Both the position numbers and the translations under genes were made by a program. Source: Octopus bimaculoides (lineage: Eukaryota). Taken from it: a DNA stretch of 64,000 nt. The stretch covers positions 105,320,761 to 105,384,760 of the forward strand of contig NC_068981.1 of NCBI RefSeq assembly GCF_001194135.2. The letters run 5' to 3'. Shown piece by piece: positions 13,464-61,773 of the stretch. Each line of letters begins with the position of its first letter. Position 1 is the first letter of the stretch. The notes below the pieces were generated by a model that was given only the letters and a program-made list of their open reading frames with translations, made no database searches and was not told the DNA's origin.

Positions 13464-13699
13464 CTACAACATTTCAAGTTATAATTTTTATAACTCAACC
13501 AAAACAGATTTATTCAAAACCTCTTTTCATATTAATTTCTATTTCTCAATGTGGTGGATTCTACAAATCACTTAGCACAAGTAGCAAAAAGGAAGCAGTT
13601 TCCTATTTTGATGGCATTCATCCAATAGTTTCAAATGAAGCCCCCTTTTTACAAGATTAATGTATAATTCCTAAGATAACCAAATTAATAGATGCTTAA

Positions 13700-14911
13700 C
13701 CCTTTCGTTACCAAACCGCCCGAAAAAAAATTTTGGTTGATGTGACCAAACCGCCCATAATCACCTATTCATATTTAAATGAGAATATCCGAGCAAATCT
13801 CGTTGCAGCGAGTCAGAATTCGAAGGATTTTCCACTGAAGACCTTGATAAATCTAACTCTGTAACCGAAAAAAAAAAGCACGTGGTATTTGATAATGAAT
13901 CTGTTTAATTTTCCGAAAATGAAAGCAGTGAATCCGAGAGCTCCAATGATGGCAATAAAGAGAATGAATTAGTACCTGAATGGAGTGAAAATTTTAAAAC
14001 TCCTTTCAGTGATTTTTCTGAAGAAACTGGACCAAGTCACAGTCTTACCCAGGAGAGTAAAGCTTTAGACTATTTCTTTTTGCTTTTTCCGATGTACCTA
14101 TTTGAATTGATTACGGTGGAAACAAACCGTAAAAAAGGATAGTTTGTGGTTTCCCACAAACTTGGAATGAAATTAAAGCATATTTTGCCATAAATATTAT
14201 GGGCATTAGAAAGTTACCTAGAATAACAAATTACTGGAGTAGTGATGAAACCTTTGGAGACGAATATGTCTCAAGTATAATGACGAGGATACGGTTTTTA
14301 AAATTGACTCAATATCTACATGTAAGAGACACGAGCAGTACACCAGTACGTGGATAACCAGACTTTGATCCCTTATTTAAAATAAAACCCCTCATTGACT
14401 GTGTTCAAAACACATATAAAACAGTTTATAGATGAGGATATGGCGGGCTATAAAGGCAGAGTGCGTTTTTGACAGTATATGCCAGGAAAGCCCACAAAAT
14501 GTGGGATCAAAGTTTGGAAGATTTGTGAATCAAATACTGGGTTTTAATTTTATACTGGCAAAAGAGACAGTAATGAATCCAGTAATGTGTACAACTCTTC
14601 TATAATAATATTTTGTTGTATACCCAATTGAATATTAGTTAATAACCCATTTTCTATAGCGATGTTTGAACAAAAATTTTAATAATTTTATATTTTGTTG
14701 AATTTACCTGTAATTAGAGTCACTTTGTGACAAAAATTTTGGTATAGAATTGGTTGAGAACCTTTCGTTAAATTATCTTCTAAAAATCACATTAATATGT
14801 TGATAAATAAAAAAGTTGTTTAATGAAACCAGACTAAATTTATGATTATGTTAGAAATTAATTGAAACACATAAGGGGTGTATTTTGGTTAGAAATATGG
14901 TAACGAAAGGG
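13700..14911 (+). mobile_element. Internally deleted piggyBac transposon in an RPL27 intron
   Basis: TTAA TSDs (13696-13699, 14912-14915) and 14-bp TIR ccctttcgttacca/tggtaacgaaaggg. It carries PGBD4-like transposase fragments (LDYFFLLFP, MGIRKLPRITNYWSSD, DPLFKIKPLID, QYMPGKPTKCGIKVW) with stops. Confidence 0.92.
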
Positions 14912-15434
14912 TTAAGAACTTAAGAGCAAGAAAGAAAAAGAGCATTTTGGAACAGATTTTTATCTTTGATACATGTGACACTATTCCTTATCTATGAAGC
15001 CACTAATGGAGATTCTTCCACAAATTCGCTATTAGTAACTGTCAATCCCTTCTTAAATGAATTTGCATAATTACACACGTAGAACAGCTGGTACATATAA
15101 ACGTCATAAATCCAAAAATCTGAAATGCAAACACTATTTTTTGTTCAGAGCAAACAAAAAAACTTAAGCAATTAGAAACTGGGTAAAATGCAATTTGCAT
15201 TAGTTATAAAAAGAGCTTAAGATGTGTGATTCGCAACAACATATCAAAGAATAAAAACTATCAATCTCTCAATTTTATTACAATTTCTAAAACCCACCCC
15301 CAATAGATACAAAGTTAATGCTGTAAAAATAATTTGTTACTTGAGAATACAATATAAGTTTTAGTAAAATGAGATAAAGGGAAAAAAAAAAAAAAGAAAC
15401 TAAATTGAATGCAAACTACTAACAATAATAATAA

Positions 15435-15525
15435 CATCGAAAAATACCTTAGGAATGAGAACCCAGGTTCAAAATTTCCCCAAGACACCCGAAGAAGGCT
15501 GGAGGGTATATCAGCCGAAACGTTA
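15435..15525 (+). mobile_element. Penelope-like terminal-repeat fragment with a degenerate hammerhead motif
   Basis: ccgaaga-aggctg-gagggtatat-cagcc-gaaac, i.e. CUGANGA / stem II / GAAAC layout with a U4->C change. Related to 45782-45814. Confidence 0.6.
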
Positions 15526-16339
15526 AAAATAATTACTTTTCATAAATATCCAGAAATTTGACCCTGCTTCAAAAAATCCATATCACTTGTTTTGAATAAT
15601 TTTTAAAGTTTGCCTTGCATTCTCTGTTCAATGGTATGTTTTCTCAACAAGTGAAGCTGTGCATTTATAATACCTATTCATATTTTATACAGTTCTTTTA
15701 ATTTATATCACTATTTATATAATTTTTTTACTGTCCTATTGTAAAGAACATTTATTTCTGTATACTATATAAAAAAATTAAACATCAAGAAGGTTTAAAA
15801 ATTGATATTGTATCTCTTATAATGCAAAGGAATTAATCAATCACATGGGGAAAAAAGTCATGTGGTCTGCAAGTTCAACCCCCTGCATGATATTTATTAG
15901 GCTAAAATGGAAGCTCCTTGTTTGTGTGTTTATAGCAAGAAGATATACACATTGCTAAGAAATTACCTATAAATTAGTGTATCAAATGAAAAATACTTTT
16001 TCACCTTTTCCCACCTGGACTGACATTCGCTTTCAAGATTAGTTTCAAACTTTTGTACAAAGTCAGTAATTCTAACCATGGTGGAATTTGAACTCAGAAC
16101 ATAAAGAGACAAAATGTTGCTAAGCATTTTGCCTGGTATGCTAACAATTCTGCCAGCCCACCGCCTTCACCTGGACTGAGATTTCCTTCCAATATTGCCA
16201 CCAGATGTGCAATAAACCAACAATAAGTGTCTTGGAAGCTTGTAACCAAGAATATTTTGTTCACACATGCATGATATAAAATAAATCTAAGAGGCACACA
16301 CTCACAAGTTACTTGAACTGCAAGTAAATTTTTCCATAG

Positions 16340-16473
16340 AGACGTTTCTGTAAAAACGCTATTACTAACAAACCAGTGTTAGCAAAAGTTCCAAGTTTTT
16401 GGTAGAAATTTTTATAGCAAGCACAAAAATTAAATCCAGCTATCAGAAACTGGAAACAGAGTGCAGCACTGCA
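16340..16473 (-). ncRNA. H/ACA snoRNA-like paralog 2 (3' box ACG)
   Basis: Duplicate of 17223-17346 with the same hairpin-1 pocket (GCACTC / ATTTTT), H box ATAAAA, and hairpin 2 with a different but still paired upper stem. The terminal box reads ACG. Confidence 0.6.
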
Positions 16474-17222
16474 TAAAAAGTGTCTTAAAACAGTAAACCA
16501 ATTGCAGTTTTTGTGATTTATAACTTATTGCAATTCTATATCAAAGGTGGTCTTCACTTAAAATCATTTTTAGGTCCCACAAGTGGTTCTGCAGCAAGTA
16601 AAATATTAAATCCATTTAAGAAACCAAGCATAGAATGCAGTTTCATTAACTGTAAAAGGGCATTAAGACATGATTAATATTCAAACAATTCTAGTGTGTA
16701 TATTTATTCCCTTTCACAATCACTTAACCCTGAATGATATTTTACCAACTCTTATACTATCCCATCCACTTAATTCATTTTAGATGTTTGAGTGAACCAG
16801 TGCCTTGTTAAATTGTCATGGAAATACTATTAGCTTTATTAGTGGTGTTAAGGAGTCAAACATATCTAATGGCCACATTGCACCGGATATTTTACTAATC
16901 TAAAACTTATGAATTTAGACTGGTTTAATAAAACTTTACTTAACATATTGCGATTTTTGAAACTCAATTCAACAAAAGGTTCTTAACCAAATGTTTCATA
17001 ACTTTGTCTCAAAAACGAATCTAATTACAGGTAAATTCAACAAAATATTAAATTATTTAAACATCAACATAGAAAATGAGTTATAAGCCAATTTTCAATG
17101 AGTATACAAAATTTTAACAATAGAGAATTGTGCAAATTACTAGATTATTTATTAGTTACAGAGCTTAAAGAGTTAAAGTGGCATACCAAAGTCACTTGAG
17201 CTGCAGACAAAAATATTTTCTC

Positions 17223-17346
17223 AAATGTCTCTACAAACAAGCTATTACAAAGTAGCTTTGCAAAAAATACAAGTTGTAGAAATTTTTATAGCAAGCATAA
17301 AAATTGAATCCAGCTATCAGAAACTGGGCACAGAGTGCAGCTTGCA
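17223..17346 (-). ncRNA. Intronic box H/ACA snoRNA, predicted 18S rRNA pseudouridylation guide (SNORA28/snR80-like site)
   Basis: Sense to RPL27, 124 nt. Layout is hairpin GCAAGC..GCTTGC, H box ATAAAA (17284-17289), hairpin TCTACAA..TTGTAGA, then ACA plus 3 nt. The pocket strands are complementary to conserved 18S AAAAAU-U-A-GAGUG(C/U), with the pocket top 15 nt from the H box. Confidence 0.8.
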
Positions 17347-17384
17347 TATTTCTGCTGTAGATAAATTTTAATTCTACAACTTAC

Positions 17385-17554
17385 CTAGTAGGCATAAGAT
17401 GGTTATAATTGCAAACTTTGATGAATGTCTTAATCTTAGATCTCTGCTTCAGCTTCTTTTTGCTCATGCGTTTTGTCACTTTGCGGGGATGTCGGTCAAT
17501 TCCTGCTACTAAAGCATGGGAATATCCTTTGTCTTGAGTACCTTCATCATAATT
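17385..17554 (-). CDS. RPL27: RPL27 coding exon 2 ([57 protein letters not shown])
   Basis: Strong eL27 homology; 170 nt; GT-AG. Confidence 0.97.
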
Positions 17555-18917: not shown

Positions 18918-18998
18918 CTTAACAATGATGGCTTTCCTGCCAGCAAATCTACCGTTCAGGATCAACACCACCTTGTTGGCTTTCATAAACTTCTTCAT
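18918..18998 (-). CDS. RPL27: RPL27 first coding exon (MKKFMKANKVVLILNGRFAGRKAIIVK)
   Basis: eL27 N-terminus. The acceptor lies 7 nt upstream of the ATG (exon starts at 19005). Spliced total is 136 aa. Confidence 0.97.
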
Positions 18999-19794
18999 TG
19001 TTGTGCTGCAAAAAAAAAATATATATATATATATAAATATATATTTAAGAGTTTATTTTAATAAAAAAAGAGAAATCAAATATTTATTGCAAACAGAAAC
19101 TTTACTAGCAATCCTTGAGATTAGGAATCACTTTCACTTGTCATCCCGTGGTTAATATTTTAAGAGAGATGGCCTGCAAAAAATGTTTTTTGCCCTAAGT
19201 TTGCAGGCATCTCTATCATGCTTGAATTCTTTTGCCTTGTTCAGAGGTACAGGCGTGGCTGTGTAATTAAGAAGTGCACTTCCCAACTATGTGGTTTCAG
19301 GTTCAGTCCTACTACATGCAACCTTGGTGCTTTCTGCTGTAGCTATAAGCCAACCAAAGCCTTCTGAATGTATTTGGCTAAATATGTTTCTCCTCTTCAC
19401 ATTACACAACTGGTATGAGTGCCACCATCATACAAGTGGTGTTGATTGCTTCCTATCTTCTATGGAAACCTGTCCAGTCACGGAGAAATAGCTTGCATAG
19501 AAACAGGTGCAAGTTTTTAAAAAAGGATATTTGGCCATAGAAAATCTGCTCCAGCAAATTGATTGACCACCCAAGTATGAAAAAGTGGATGTTAAAACTG
19601 AGGAGAGGTGCATGTTTGTAATCTCCAACATCACGAATCTGAAAAATTTTGCATTTTTCAAGAAGAGGTGCGAAACTGCATTAGCCCCGAGAATTATTAG
19701 AAAATTATACAAACTGTAGTTATATCTAGAAATAGCAAGTAGGAAGGCTATCTTAGAGTATTAGTAATAAACCACGTGTGTTTATTTACATTTC

Positions 19795-20060
19795 TGAAGA
19801 AGATCGTCGGTTTCCGTAAAATTTTTTATATTTTTTTACATATGGGGTTGGGGGGAACGGGGATCTTTTGAAGTCGGCGTAAAAGCGAAAGAGACGTGTG
19901 TGTGTGTATGTTTGATGGGGTGTGCGAGACAGAAAGGCGGTGTGGATGTGAAGTTCATTGTTAGTATGCGTGAAGAGAGAGAGACAGCTGAAATTTAAAT
20001 TTTTATTCACTTTTTGTAGTGAGTGAATGTGTAAATGAGGACAGAGAATAAGAGAGAGAG
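19795..20060 (+). mobile_element. One arm of a long-TIR MITE family also present at 61015-61676
   Basis: Shared tgaa(g/a)aagatcgtcg.tttccgtaaa...ttttgaagtc.gcgtaaa.gcgaaagagac...gatggggtgtgcgagacagaaag. Confidence 0.7.
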
Positions 20061-20624
20061 GTATGTATGTATGAATGGCTTCAATGACACATATATACAT
20101 AGCTGTACATATGCATATATACACACATATATAAACGTAAATGTATTTGTGTGTGTGTGTGTGTACGTATATATATAGGCATACATCTATCTATAATTTG
20201 CAGTAAATAGATGAAGTTTAGCCATTACTTTATTTCAATTAATGCCAGTTTCGTTAAACAACCACACATGCGGCGGTCACTAACATGTGGCGAAGGTAAA
20301 GAATACGTACACTCGGTGGTTAGGGTTAGAGTTTTTGTTACGCCGAAAACCGATGGTTTCCTTTACCTCTGCCTATGTTTTAACTCAATCAACAACGAAA
20401 GTGGTGGCCTAATCAAGTATTGCCAAGTTGTTTTATATTTTTCGAAGCCATATTGTTTGTTTCGTAATTTAATTTAAATGGAAAAATATATAGGTTCGCA
20501 GTTTTGAAATAGAGTTGAATTTCTCGTTTTTTAAGTGCATATCTATGAATTTGGGGATTGAATATTTAATTTCGCTCAGTATAAACTAGTCAAGTCTTCC
20601 TAAATCACTAATATAAAAAATTAG

Positions 20625-21355: not shown

Positions 21356-21727
21356 ACTGACGAGATTTTACGTGAATGAACGTAATTTCACGAAGTTTCA
21401 ATGTTGATATAAAATAACGCTGTAGATGGACGGAAAACGAAAAGTAATTTTCAATGAAATATTGCTATTAAAATTTATAGCAAAAAAATGTTATTGGTGC
21501 CATAAAAATAAAGTATTTTGCGACGAACTTATTAATTAAAAATGATTTCTTCTTTAAAGCATTTAGCATTGACTTTATAGTTAATTGTATTTCAAAACTA
21601 TAGAAAACGGTGAGCTTTTTTTTTTTAAAGGGAGATTACTGTATCTTCATAATTGCACAAAAAGTAAACTACTCACTTCAGGTTAATCTGTAAGTTGCGT
21701 GTTGATAAATTGATCCAAATTTTAAAG
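21356..21727. promoter_or_regulatory. Shared bidirectional promoter / DHX29 5'UTR region
   Basis: About 370 bp separate the inferred RPL27 TSS from the DHX29 ATG; local CpG enrichment. Confidence 0.65.
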
Positions 21728-24700
21728 ATGGGGAAGAAAAAGCAGAAGGATCAAGAAAAGGTAACGAAAAGTTATAAATTTACTAAATCTGACAATATTG
21801 ATAATTCTGATGATTCAACGCCAAAGATTATACTAAATACCAATATGGAAAAAAAATTGATTACGATGATACTTGATTGGAAAAAAAGTAAAATACTTGT
21901 AAAAGACGTCAGTGAAAGAATGACAACAAAAAGATTGACGGATGTATATACTTGTTTGGCGCGTGCCGGTTTCAAACACAACCAGATAGAGTCTGCTATG
22001 AGGAGCACACTGATATATGGCGGTGATCTTGTTGATTCTCTGGACTGGCTCTGTCTCAATATTGCAAATGACGATCTTCCTTCAGAATTTTCCGAAGCGT
22101 TAAAAAGAGAAGAAATAAAAAGGCGACCAGGATTTAAAGAAGAGCAGGTAGATAAATCGCAAATTTCTTCTGGTTATCAAGTAGTTGAAAAACCTGTCCA
22201 AAAAACAAGTGAGAATAAGGACAGCCGTTTGCCCGAGGGAGAAGGCGGAAAAAAAGACTGGGTGAAAAACTGGATTATGCAATATGCTGAAGAAGAATCT
22301 GACAGTGATTTAGAAGAAAACGCTGCACCGATAGATCCAAATATAAAATACAAAACTTTAAGTTCTTCTTTAGATTCTACAATAGTACTCGCTGAACAAG
22401 CGAAAAAATCTGGAAACAAAGAAAAGCATAGAGAATACTCAAAAAAGATCCGGCAAATGCGGCTAGATATGGACGAATTAGCTACCCATCCAGACTTTGA
22501 TCGTAAACTTGCTGGAATTTCTCTTTTAGCACCAACCAAACCTGAACCTAAACCTTCCAAAGTACAGCCTCCGAGTTTGACCGTATCAAATGCTAGTTCA
22601 GGTACTGGAACTAATAAAGCCTTGTCTAAGGATAGCTGCAACTCAGATGTATCAAAAAGCACACCAGTAACAGCAAGGCCAAAATCCTCCAAGAAAGCTA
22701 GTGATGAAGATCTTGCTCTTGATATGTTAGAGAATATGGCAATTGGTGATGCACCAAAACCTTTGCCTGAGAAAAAGAAAGGAGCATCACATATAGTTAG
22801 CCGTAGTTTTGAGTACACAAAACAACAATGGACTGGGAAATCACCTAAACAATTCCTTAATGACTGGACTCGGAAAAACCTCCCTAAAAGTGACTTAGCC
22901 CATTATGAAAGAGTCCATGTGAAAAACTTTTACAAATGCAAATCTTCCATTTCCAAGAAAGATGGTTCTCAACTTACTGTTATACCAGACATCCTTTGCC
23001 CCTCTGTAAAAGAAGCTGAACATGTTGGCTCTACTCTGTTACTCTATAATCTTTGCAGAGGACAACCAATCTATCAGTTACTTCCACCTCCTTATCGAGA
23101 TTTATGGCTAGAATGGATGGAAGCAGAAAGAATTAGTAAACTGAGAGCACAAGAAATTAATAACAAACCCAGAGATACCCTTGTTGCAAAACTGCTGAAA
23201 GAACTCAAGTTAGCCCCAACACTCTCCAAATCTAAAGCTGAAAAACCTTCAGATGAGCATAACAGTGATGACAGTGTATGTGATGACTGGTTCTTAGCAG
23301 ATGTGGAAGATCCTGAAGAAATTGTAGAAAAACCCAAGGAGAAAAAAATTGTTTCGAAGCCTAGGGTTAATGAAATTAAAGACAAATTTTTGAAAAAGAT
23401 AAACAGTAAGAAATATAATGAATATTTAAATCAACGGCAATCACTACCTGTATTTGCATATAAAGAAGACATACTTGCTCAAATTGATCGCAGTAAAGTT
23501 GTTGTGATTGCTGGAGAAACTGGTAGTGGAAAAAGCACACAAATTCCCCATTTCCTACTTAAAGATAGAATTTTGTGCGGAGAAACGTGTAATATCATTT
23601 GTACTCAACCACGTCGAATCTCTGCTGTGAGTCTTGCAAACAGGGTTTCTCAAGAGCTAGGAGATGACCTGCCTGGTTCACCAGACTCCTTTTGTGGTTA
23701 TAAAATTCGATTTGAGTCTAAATGCTGTCCTACAACTTGTTTAACTTATTGTACTACAGGTGTTGTGCTGCGTCAGTTACATTCTGATCCTAGTTTTAAA
23801 AATGTCACCCACATCTTAGTTGATGAAGTACATGAAAGAACAGTTCAATCAGACTTTCTTTTGATTATTCTGAAAAGACTTCTTGAGTCACGTGATGACA
23901 TTAAAGTTATATTAATGAGTGCAACTATTGACTGTAACCGCCTCTCTGATTACTTCAACCATTGTCCTATCATTAAAATTCCAGGCCGAACATTCCCTGT
24001 TGATATTTTCTATTTAGAAGACATCATAGAAATGAACAATTATGTCTTGGAAGAAGATTCTCCTTATTGCATCCCAGCAGCAATGCTCCGTGATGAGCAG
24101 AAAACAAGTGTTGAAATCACTGGCACTGGAGGAACTAAGCAGAAAACAGATCTGTATTGGTCAAAGGAAGATATCATTGATACAAGTGGACTTGACAGAG
24201 ACAAATATAGCAAACATACCCGACTAACTGTTACGAGAATGAAACCTTACAAAATTAATTTGGATCTAATTCTTCATTTACTTAATTACATAGACGAACA
24301 TGGGGAAATTACTGATGGTGCCATTCTGATATTTCTTCCAGGATTAGCGAATATACAAGAGCTCTATGAATTGCTCCAAAGTGATCGCAAATTTGCTAAT
24401 CCCCGACGATTTAAAGTGCTTGCTCTACATTCTGTTTTGTCATCTGAAGACCAAAGCTCTGCATTTCTGTCTCCACCTAAGGGAATTCGAAAAATTGTGC
24501 TGTCTACAAACATTGCTGAAACTGGCGTTACTATTCCAGATGTAGTGTATGTAATTGATGCTGGTAAAGTAAAAGAGAATCGATACGTTGAATCAAGTCG
24601 AATGAATGCTCTAGAAGAAGTTTTTGTTAGTAAAGCTAGTGCTAAACAACGGTCCGGTCGTGCTGGGCGAGTACGCAATGGCATTTGCTATCGACTTTAT

Positions 24701-25822
24701 ACCAAAGATAATTATATGAAACTTCGTGAGTTTACTGTTCCTGAGCTTCTTCGAGTTGCTCTTGAAGAACTCTGTTTACATATCATGAAATGTAACCTAA
24801 GCAAACCAGAAGAATTTCTCCAGCTTGCACTCGATCCACCTCAGCTACAATCTGTCTCTAGAGCAATGATGATTCTTGAAGAGGTTGGGGCTTGTGAAGG
24901 AGAAGTGTTAACACCACTTGGACATCATTTAGCAGCACTTCCTGTACACGTTTCCATTGGTAAAATGCTTATTTTTGGAGCAATGTTTGGTTGTCTTGAA
25001 CCTGCAGCAGTCATTGCTGCTGCAGTAAGTGGAAAATCTCCATTTGTAGTTCCACTTGAAAAAAGGTCGGAGGCTAACATGGCTAAGCAGAATTTATCAA
25101 CAGCTTGCTCTGATCATCTCACTATTTATAATGCTTATTCTCGATGGAAAACTGCCCGCAAAGCTGGGTTTCAAGCAGAAAATGCATTCTGCATGCAGAA
25201 CTATCTTAAAAGAAAATCTCTTATTGAAATTGAAAATGTAAAGACAGATCTTATAAAGCTTATCAAATCTATTGGATTCTTAAGTCAACAAGATGAGAAA
25301 CTACTGACAAATCCAAATTCTGTTGATGGAGTTCATTTAAATCCAAAATCATGTGCTGTTATTAAAGCAGTCATTCTTGCTGGATTATATCCAAATGTGG
25401 CAAAAGTTTGTTCAGAGAAAGATCCAGATGGTACGAGTCGGATATGTGGTGCTGAGACACCTCAAGGCCATGCATTTATCCATCCTAGCTCAGTCAATCG
25501 AACATTACAGGCACAAGGCTATATGCTATACCAAGAGAAAACCAAGCAGTCACAGGTATATCTTCGAGACTGCACATTGGTCTCTCCATTCCCCTTATTG
25601 CTTTTTGGTCACAATGTAGTTGTACAACATATTCAGCAAACTGTAAGCGTTGACAAATGGATTGTATTTAAGTCACGAGCTCGGACTGCTGTCATCTTCA
25701 AAGAACTTCGAAACCTATTGAATGAACTTTTAAAGCAAAAATTAGATGACCCCAAAGCTGATTTCTATCAAGATAAATCAATATTGTCAGTTATTGATTT
25801 ATTACAAGCAGATATTTGCTAA
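21728..25822 (+). CDS. DHX29: ATP-dependent RNA helicase DHX29, single coding exon, 1364 aa
   Basis: Uninterrupted ORF from ATG 21728. DHX29-specific UBA-like segment (TLIYGGDLVDSLDWLCLN) and dsRBD segment (WTGKSPKQFLNDWTRKNLPKS...LLPPPYRDLWLEW). Helicase motifs GETGSGKST, DEVH, SAT and QRSGRAGRV, plus HA2/OB regions. Confidence 0.96.
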   Translation: MGKKKQKDQEKVTKSYKFTKSDNIDNSDDSTPKIILNTNMEKKLITMILDWKKSKILVKDVSERMTTKRLTDVYTCLARAGFKHNQIESAMRSTLIYGGDLVDSLDWLCLNIANDDLPSEFSEALKREEIKRRPGFKEEQVDKSQISSGYQVVEKPVQKTSENKDSRLPEGEGGKKDWVKNWIMQYAEEESDSDLEENAAPIDPNIKYKTLSSSLDSTIVLAEQAKKSGNKEKHREYSKKIRQMRLDMDELATHPDFDRKLAGISLLAPTKPEPKPSKVQPPSLTVSNASSGTGTNKALSKDSCNSDVSKSTPVTARPKSSKKASDEDLALDMLENMAIGDAPKPLPEKKKGASHIVSRSFEYTKQQWTGKSPKQFLNDWTRKNLPKSDLAHYERVHVKNFYKCKSSISKKDGSQLTVIPDILCPSVKEAEHVGSTLLLYNLCRGQPIYQLLPPPYRDLWLEWMEAERISKLRAQEINNKPRDTLVAKLLKELKLAPTLSKSKAEKPSDEHNSDDSVCDDWFLADVEDPEEIVEKPKEKKIVSKPRVNEIKDKFLKKINSKKYNEYLNQRQSLPVFAYKEDILAQIDRSKVVVIAGETGSGKSTQIPHFLLKDRILCGETCNIICTQPRRISAVSLANRVSQELGDDLPGSPDSFCGYKIRFESKCCPTTCLTYCTTGVVLRQLHSDPSFKNVTHILVDEVHERTVQSDFLLIILKRLLESRDDIKVILMSATIDCNRLSDYFNHCPIIKIPGRTFPVDIFYLEDIIEMNNYVLEEDSPYCIPAAMLRDEQKTSVEITGTGGTKQKTDLYWSKEDIIDTSGLDRDKYSKHTRLTVTRMKPYKINLDLILHLLNYIDEHGEITDGAILIFLPGLANIQELYELLQSDRKFANPRRFKVLALHSVLSSEDQSSAFLSPPKGIRKIVLSTNIAETGVTIPDVVYVIDAGKVKENRYVESSRMNALEEVFVSKASAKQRSGRAGRVRNGICYRLYTKDNYMKLREFTVPELLRVALEELCLHIMKCNLSKPEEFLQLALDPPQLQSVSRAMMILEEVGACEGEVLTPLGHHLAALPVHVSIGKMLIFGAMFGCLEPAAVIAAAVSGKSPFVVPLEKRSEANMAKQNLSTACSDHLTIYNAYSRWKTARKAGFQAENAFCMQNYLKRKSLIEIENVKTDLIKLIKSIGFLSQQDEKLLTNPNSVDGVHLNPKSCAVIKAVILAGLYPNVAKVCSEKDPDGTSRICGAETPQGHAFIHPSSVNRTLQAQGYMLYQEKTKQSQVYLRDCTLVSPFPLLLFGHNVVVQHIQQTVSVDKWIVFKSRARTAVIFKELRNLLNELLKQKLDDPKADFYQDKSILSVIDLLQADIC

Positions 25823-61676: not shown

Positions 61677-61701
61677 TAATTTTTCTAAAACATTAATGCC
61701 G

Positions 61702-61773
61702 TTCCCATGCCGGGAATCGAACCCGGGCCGCCTGGGTGAAAGCCAGGAATCCTAACCACTAGACCACATGGGA
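61702..61773 (-). tRNA. tRNA-Glu (anticodon TTC)
   Basis: TCCCATGTGGTCTAGTGGTTAGGATTCCTGGCTTTCACCCAGGCGGCCCGGGTTCGATTCCCGGCATGGGAA: full cloverleaf, A/B boxes, and a T4 terminator at 61687-61690. Confidence 0.97.

Follow-up and report, generated by a model that had tools for sequence, protein, structure and literature searches.

A predicted box H/ACA snoRNA in an RPL27 intron of cephalopods and its probable uridine target in 18S rRNA

The RPL27 locus of Octopus bimaculoides

The window analysed here is a stretch of 64,000 nucleotides of the Octopus bimaculoides genome (RefSeq assembly GCF_001194135.2, contig NC_068981.1, positions 105,320,761 to 105,384,760). Its minus strand carries the gene for the ribosomal protein eL27 (RPL27), whose exons were located by tblastn and by reading of the splice sites. 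The spliced product has 136 amino acids and is identical to O. bimaculoides XP_014772855.1, so the first-pass annotation had named the right host; identity to the protein of O. vulgaris and O. sinensis is 99%. The host intron is AT-rich (GC content 0.34), and the RNA element described below lies in it in the sense of the host gene.

19005-18918 (ATG at 18998), 17554-17385, 13463-13353 and 12998-12950, minus strand: exons of RPL27
17385..17554, minus strand: RPL27 coding exon upstream of the element, amino acids 28-84
13464..17384, minus strand: host intron, 3921 nt, between positions 2 and 3 of codon 84

Head-to-head with RPL27 lies an uninterrupted open reading frame of 1375 amino acids (21695-25822, plus strand) for a DHX29-type DEAH helicase with the domains UBA_DHX29, DSRM_DHX29, DEAD, Helicase_C, HA2 and OB_NTP_bind. 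An intronless gene of this size is unusual in animals. In O. sinensis, Argonauta and Sepia, too, RPL27 has DHX29 as its neighbour. A CA/TA-rich tract of low complexity (for example CACACATATAT) is found at about 19780-20190, upstream of the first coding exon of RPL27 and toward the divergent DHX29; the matching tract of O. sinensis yields spurious matches to mir-297/466/3149. A weak match to mir-2 downstream of RPL27 in O. sinensis was discarded, the corresponding position of the window having no convincing hairpin (z = -0.3).

Cuttlefish-like RNA-seq contigs from Logan (L003-L008, L134) contain the DHX29 frame and, on the opposite strand and about 500 nt apart, the spliced RPL27 frame. Such joint contigs are either overlapping transcripts from a bidirectional promoter or chimaeric assemblies. 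A variant of RPL27 with 121 amino acids, also present in cuttlefish-like Logan contigs, stops behind coding exon 3, a sign that the last intron may have been retained. The cuttlefish RPL27 contigs (L003-L008, L134-L137) are spliced transcripts without the host intron and are uninformative on the element.

Anatomy of the element

The upstream RPL27 exon ends at 17385 (...CCTACTAG, followed by GTAAGT) and the element starts at 17346, with exactly 38 intronic nucleotides in between. From 17346 to 17223 of the minus strand it reads UGCAAGCUGCACUCUGUGCCCAGUUUCUGAUAGCUGGAUUCAAUUUUUAUGCUUGCUAUAAAAAUUUCUACAACUUGUAUUUUUUGCAAAGCUACUUUGUAAUAGCUUGUUUGUAGAGACAUUU. In what follows the RNA is numbered 1-124, the window coordinate being 17347 minus the RNA position, and the element is called copy 1.

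17223..17346, minus strand: predicted box H/ACA snoRNA, copy 1, intact, 124 nt; covariance-model match with exactly these ends, 157 bits
17333..17338, minus strand: 5' pocket strand GCACUC, RNA 9-14; complement of 18S GAGUG(C/U), 6+6 in the pocket scan
17299..17304, minus strand: 3' pocket strand AUUUUU, RNA 43-48; complement of 18S AAAAAU
17284..17289, minus strand: H box AUAAAA (ANANNA) in the hinge, RNA 58-63
17229..17281, minus strand: 3' hairpin, RNA 66-118; structure kept, sequence not; no conserved rRNA target
17226..17228, minus strand: ACA box, RNA 119-121, 3 nt before the inferred 3' end

The 5' hairpin has the lower stem GCAAGC/GCUUGC (RNA 2-7 and 51-56) and, at RNA 15-42, a loop on the upper stem CCAGUU/AGCUGG. 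A43, the top base of its pocket, precedes the H box by 15 nt in Octopus; in Argonauta the distance is 16 nt. The 3' hairpin is made of the lower stem UUCUACAA/UUGUAGAG and the upper stem UUGCAAAG/CUUUGUAA. The unconstrained minimum-energy fold of copy 1 gives this order of hairpin, hinge and hairpin at -33 kcal/mol (z = -3.1); only 2 of 200 shuffled sequences fold as well, and the two-hairpin shape is also obtained when the pocket is held open. The first-pass annotation had described a hairpin-H-hairpin-ACA architecture in host sense, 38 nt from the donor, and all of this is present in the sequence. In the thermodynamic fold a small GCAC/GUGC hairpin sits inside the 5' pocket and would need to open in the RNP. 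A CAB box, the criterion for a scaRNA, was not found: there is no UGAG within 17223-17346, and the loops of copy 1 read UCUGAU and CUA.

Conservation in cephalopods

The RPL27 loci of O. sinensis, Argonauta hians and the cuttlefish Acanthosepion (Sepia) pharaonis were compared, and each of them has an orthologue of the element in the same intron. The 5' hairpin appears to be under selection: octopus and cuttlefish agree at 93.4% of its 61 nt, compared with 73-80% in the coding exons of RPL27. Outside the exons, octopus has no sequence in common with Argonauta or Sepia across the gene of about 7 kb other than this element. The four copy-1 orthologues all fold as hairpin-hinge-hairpin-ACA, with z values from -2.4 to -3.6. 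The pocket strand GCACUC is invariant in all four, and AUUUUU is invariant as well, with one extra U in Argonauta. The H box is AUAGAA in Argonauta and AGAGAA in Sepia, and ACA abuts the 3' hairpin in every copy-1 orthologue, those of O. sinensis, Argonauta and Sepia included.

A covariance model (R1) was built from the three octopod sequences, with Sepia kept out of the training. It finds the Sepia orthologue with 83 bits and an E-value of about 1e-13. When six copies, two of them paralogues, were aligned under the guidance of the model, 93.9% of the pair cells held standard pairs, compared with 24-47% in slid controls, and nine pairs had changes on both sides, a number reached by none of 500 shuffles; these counts come from six sequences only, in an alignment fitted to the model. 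All nine doubly changed pairs are in the 3' hairpin, whose lower stem has, for example, UUCUAC/GUAGAG in Octopus and UUCAGU/ACUGAG in Sepia. The stems of the 5' hairpin are invariant or show wobble changes only, so that conservation, and not covariation, is what supports them. An alignment of the four orthologues with MAFFT and RNAalifold was off register and produced a spurious 3' hairpin; it is superseded by the model-guided alignment.

Family assignment

Scanning the whole window at the Rfam gathering thresholds did not return the element. The only match was a tRNA-Glu(UUC) gene (61701-61773, minus strand, 66.5 bits), and the element becomes visible only at E-value thresholds. Its best match is then RF00545 (snopsi18S-841/snoR66), with 28.4 bits and an E-value of 0.0077 in 801 nt (gathering score 50). 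The Argonauta sequence matches best to RF00400 (SNORA28), with 34.8 bits and an E-value of 7e-5 in a 171-nt search (gathering score 65), and that of Sepia again to RF00545 with 32 bits (gathering score 50). Hence, the best sub-threshold matches of the three orthologues are all in clan CL00033 (SNORA28/snopsi18S-841). Infernal and Rfam, named in the first-pass annotation as the means of checking the family, support the assignment as far as the clan goes, but the scores of 28-35 bits are well under the gathering values of 50-65. It follows that pipelines based on these thresholds would miss the element. The published cephalopod snoRNA annotation that we found is built solely on Rfam homology, as in the giant squid with its 34 families (PMC6962438), and the element is probably unannotated so far in cephalopods.

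Vertebrate SNORA28 (ACA28; RF00400) has in common with the octopus element the H/ACA architecture, the intronic location and the sense orientation. Its 5' pocket (..CACUCU.. / ..AAUUU..) addresses the same 18S uridine, human 815, as the cephalopod pocket, and its lower stem (GC)AAGC/GCUUGC and hinge UAUAG are recognisably like those of the octopus RNA. The hosts differ, being EIF5 in vertebrates and RPL27 in cephalopods. For Psi18S-841 of Drosophila and snoR66 of plants (RF00545), the consensus of the 5' hairpin, uGCAAgc.GCACUCUGUgUC...ACAAUUUGUuAgcUUGCuAgA, is nearly the same as in octopus, but the 3' hairpin aligns poorly to the RNA of the window. ceN41 of Caenorhabditis (RF01631) shows weak matches of 19 and 17 bits through the GCACUC ... 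AUUU pocket of its 5' hairpin; only its 5' half aligns to the cephalopod RNAs, far below gathering. Yeast snR80 has a transcription unit of its own and a further target in 25S. In 18S it acts on the equivalent uridine, 759 (PMC8522698); it is likened to the cephalopod RNA by target site, not by sequence.

The predicted target of the 5' hairpin

The pocket of the 5' hairpin is complementary, 6+6, to a stretch of 18S rRNA that is found eukaryote-wide, GAAAAAAU-U-A-GAGUG(C/U); its strands GCACUC and AUUUUU pair on the two sides of a single U. The rRNA would be laid out at the pocket as AAAAAU, then U A, then GAGUGC, which places the predicted target U at the lower end of the upper stem and at a distance of 15 nt from the H box. 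We scanned 555 kb of eukaryotic rDNA contigs with a bipartite rule that leaves the U and the following N unpaired and asks for contiguous pairs to either side. The best match was 6+6 at UUGAAAAAAU[U]AGAGUG(C/U), second U, with zero register offset. The pairing claimed in the first-pass annotation, down to the unpaired second U at 15 nt from the H box, is the one that came out on top. It contains no G-U pair with the GAGUGC variant, which 32 among the loci listed have, and one with GAGUGU. Alternative targets of the 5' pocket all score lower and occur in one or two loci each. Since the rDNA loci had been chosen for carrying the motif, the scan speaks for the specificity of the pairing and not for the presence of the motif.

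The reference material consisted of metagenome contigs with GAAAAAATTAGAGTGYTCAAAGCAGGC, found at no fewer than 120 loci; in the two loci that were checked with Rfam, SSU, 5.8S and LSU rRNA are complete and the motif is inside the SSU. The Rfam consensus SSU_rRNA_eukarya has GAaaAAAUuagAGUGuUcAAAGCAGG at about positions 755-780 of the model. Among these contigs one 18S has a group I intron, and one contig carries two tandem rDNA units (L053 8173-8528, minus strand; L101 2132, 9296). A spurious antisense open frame of 92-101 amino acids spans the 18S target site.

Counted from the 5' end of 18S, the two U's of the stretch are 814/815 in a contig with a vertebrate-sequence 18S of 1869 nt and 758/759 in a fungal 18S contig. 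This agrees with the literature, in which the 5' pocket of SNORA28 guides 18S-815, equal to yeast 759 and Xenopus 778 (PMC8522698, PMC6984369), and the numbering that the first-pass annotation had given (U815 for SNORA28, U759 for snR80) was correct. That octopus 18S rRNA has AAAAAUUAGAGUG(C/U) is a prediction that rests on the universality of the stretch, as seen in the eukaryote-wide consensus.

The 3' hairpin

The sequences of the 3' pocket differ by lineage: AACUUGUAUUUUU / AUAGCUUGU in Octopus, CCUGGACAUGUGCUGUU / AAUAGUUUGUU in Argonauta and UUUUCUUAAUU / CUAAGGAU in Sepia. Within the Sepia and Argonauta hairpins these strands are for the most part paired with each other, so that hardly any open pocket remains. 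No recurrent target was found when the 3' hairpins of the six copies were compared with the 555 kb of eukaryotic rDNA; the top matches were singletons in variable or spacer regions, or were rich in G-U pairs.

In SNORA28 the 3' pocket is directed at 18S-866, a role that is evolutionarily labile among vertebrates (PMC8522698, PMC6984369). None of the cephalopod 3' hairpins is complementary to this site. After the U863/U866 stretch had been located by counting on human-length 18S, the best pairing of a cephalopod 3' hairpin with the 866 site (GGAAUAA[U]GGAAUAGG) was 1+5, and the stretch AUGAUUAAGAGGGAC, which is position 913 and not the 866 site, gave no match to a 3' hairpin either. Judged by complementarity, the second guide function of SNORA28 is lost in the cephalopod gene, and the 3' hairpin is most likely without a guide function on rRNA. 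We conclude that it is maintained for the RNP architecture and the ACA box and not for a conserved rRNA target; a target that is cephalopod-specific, or that is not rRNA, is possible.

Interpretation of the element

Taken together, we read 17346..17223 as a canonical intron-encoded box H/ACA snoRNA, the cephalopod counterpart of SNORA28/snR80/Psi18S-841, which would guide pseudouridylation of the equivalent of U815; from sequence comparison we put the probability of this reading at about 0.88. Following established H/ACA biology, the RNA would be transcribed within the RPL27 pre-mRNA. The dyskerin/Nop10/Nhp2 core would assemble on it during transcription, and Gar1 would later take the place of Naf1. 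Splicing, debranching and exonucleolytic trimming would release the RNA, about 124 nt long, with its 3' end 3 nt past the ACA box. Dyskerin would then convert the U815/U759-equivalent of pre-18S rRNA to pseudouridine, and the 3' hairpin with the ACA box would supply the second half of the RNP and the stability of the RNA. A 38-aa open reading frame that overlaps the element, taken as a proxy for transcript contigs, has no assembly match on record, which says little either way.

The element could be a genuine H/ACA RNA with another conserved role, that is, an orphan or chaperone-type RNA, a guide acting on a different RNA or the source of smaller RNAs. The 3' hairpin without an identifiable target would fit such a role, and not every predicted guide pocket is active on endogenous rRNA (PMC8522698). 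However, both strands of the 5' pocket are invariant across the cephalopod sample and common to the consensus of SNORA28, Psi18S-841 and ceN41, the register and the distance of 15 nt are canonical, and the equivalent site is modified by the same guide family in vertebrates and yeast (PMC8522698, PMC6984369). We therefore regard a role other than guiding the 18S uridine as improbable.

Still less probable is a cis-acting intronic structure that regulates splicing or expression of RPL27 and gives rise to no stable trans-acting RNA. Genes for ribosomal proteins often bear autoregulatory intronic structures, and in octopods the element is close to the splice donor (38 nt in O. bimaculoides, 25 nt in Argonauta). 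In Sepia, however, the distances are 5.65 kb to the donor and about 1.15 kb to the acceptor. This lack of a conserved position relative to the splice sites argues against a splicing-regulatory structure and fits the position-independent processing of H/ACA RNAs. Moreover, a splicing structure needs neither a conserved H box, nor an ACA box, nor a pocket complementary to rRNA, and nothing comparable is found in the RPL27 introns of other lophotrochozoans.

That an AT-rich intron forms two hairpins, ANANNA, ACA and a short rRNA complement by chance, as might be argued from its GC content, from the Rfam scores under gathering and from about ten unrelated matches to a relaxed pocket pattern in the 64-kb window, is effectively refuted by the orthologues in the same intron of four cephalopods with a 5' hairpin more conserved than the coding exons, by the compensatory changes in the 3' hairpin, by the match of 83 bits to the untrained Sepia sequence and the convergence of three orthologues on one Rfam clan, and by the differing flanks, which mean that the cephalopod loci are not assembly duplicates of one sequence.

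The guide reading adds a well-supported and probably unannotated guide RNA to the cephalopod genomes and predicts a specific pseudouridine in the 18S rRNA of octopus. It leaves the current understanding of snoRNA biology unchanged. The gene in the RPL27 intron is of an ordinary kind.

History of the host gene

RPL27 of abalone, oyster, scallop, chiton and a nemertean has the same four coding exons, but the snoRNA was not found in any of these five non-cephalopod lophotrochozoan loci by Rfam searches at E-values up to 1-5, the relaxed pocket pattern or model R1. The relaxed pattern gave single matches in the oyster and nemertean loci, both unrelated sequences, and model R1 gave noise only (E-values above 5). 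The presence of orthologues in the same intron of octopods and cuttlefish dates the gene at this place at least to the ancestor of octopods and decapodiforms. Among the taxa sampled (Nautilus not included), the location in RPL27 is, as far as these genomes tell, specific to cephalopods.

Host switching of snoRNAs is commonplace, and so are ribosomal-protein hosts. In chicken, the orthologues of ACA28 are in EIF5 intron 5 and CCT6A intron 3 and target 18S-775, listed as the snR80 equivalent (PMC2653536). Together with the five RPL27 loci that lack the element, the EIF5 location supports the lineage-specific relocation suggested in the first-pass annotation. The gene is thus an example of a change of host, from EIF5 in vertebrates to RPL27 in cephalopods, in which one guide function was kept. 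A further point had been made of a gene for a 60S protein that delivers a guide for 40S rRNA. This is borne out at the RPL27 locus but was overstated, such an arrangement being routine; RPL21 of chicken also hosts an 18S guide (PMC2653536).

Further copies in the same intron

The intron of Octopus contains two more sequences related to copy 1.

16340..16473, minus strand: copy 2, paralogue; covariance-model match, 85.8 bits
15123..15199, minus strand: third, degenerate relic of the 5' hairpin; weak covariance-model match, 24.4 bits, E-value 0.03
17189-17205 and 16306-16322, minus strand: 17-nt motif, followed by GTATGC or GTGAGT

Over 66 nt, which include the H box, the upper stem, both pocket strands and, from the lower stem, the 3' strand, copy 2 is 94% identical to copy 1; the 3' hairpin of copy 2 has diverged. 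O. sinensis has an orthologue of copy 2, and the RPL27 loci of Argonauta and Sepia have none. The relic could be aligned to copies 1 and 2 and has lost the pocket and the upper stem; it has a counterpart in O. sinensis (L001 10228-10296). From these alignments it appears that the snoRNA has been duplicated within the intron in the Octopus lineage, with copy 1 intact, copy 2 decaying or remodelled and copy 3 a relic. The first-pass annotation was accurate in the features that it described but had missed copy 2 and the relic, as well as the absence of a SNORA28-like second target in the 3' hairpin; the partly decayed second copy and the third relic are new here. The gene also exemplifies the loss of a second guide function and the way in which paralogues arise and decay within an intron, with what looks like a shift of the ACA box.

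This shift is seen in copy 2 of O. bimaculoides, in which ACG has taken the place of the ancestral ACA (16345-16343) and a change from G to A has made a new ACA (16351-16349) 6 nt upstream, directly after a stem AAAAAC/GUUUUU. Copy 2 may thus be in decay or may have moved its ACA box. In O. sinensis it has kept the ACA, its pocket strand reads GCAUUC (a G-U pair with the target) and its fold is canonical with the pocket held open. Copy 2 might still be functional, as a second gene directed at the same 18S site, and not a pseudogene. The new ACA behind its stem in O. bimaculoides and the ACA and fold in O. sinensis would agree with this, as would the 94% conservation between the two Octopus species and the fact that copy 2 still has its H box, both pocket strands and a lower stem with a single bulge. 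However, conservation between two congeners says little, Argonauta and Sepia lack the copy, and in O. bimaculoides its unconstrained fold is not H/ACA-shaped and has z values of only -1.9 to -2.0, and two pairs in the lower stem of the 3' hairpin are broken in addition to the lost ancestral ACA. A functional second gene is therefore a tentative proposal, and we lean toward a pseudogene.

Copies 1 and 2 are both followed, at a distance of 17-22 nt, by a 17-nt motif, TGCAGYTCAAGTRACTT = TGCAG(C/T)TCAAGT(G/A)ACTT. It has two matches in the window, compared with 0.05 expected, and is absent after the snoRNA genes of Argonauta and Sepia. Its layout, TGCAG, then YTCAAGTRACTT, then a donor-like GT site, resembles an acceptor, a micro-exon of 12-14 nt and a donor. 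We consider it unlikely that the motifs are real cryptic units of this type, which would either split the 3.9-kb intron so that each intron has one snoRNA or give frame-shifted, NMD-targeted isoforms of RPL27. If they were, they would couple the output of snoRNA to the regulation of the host gene.
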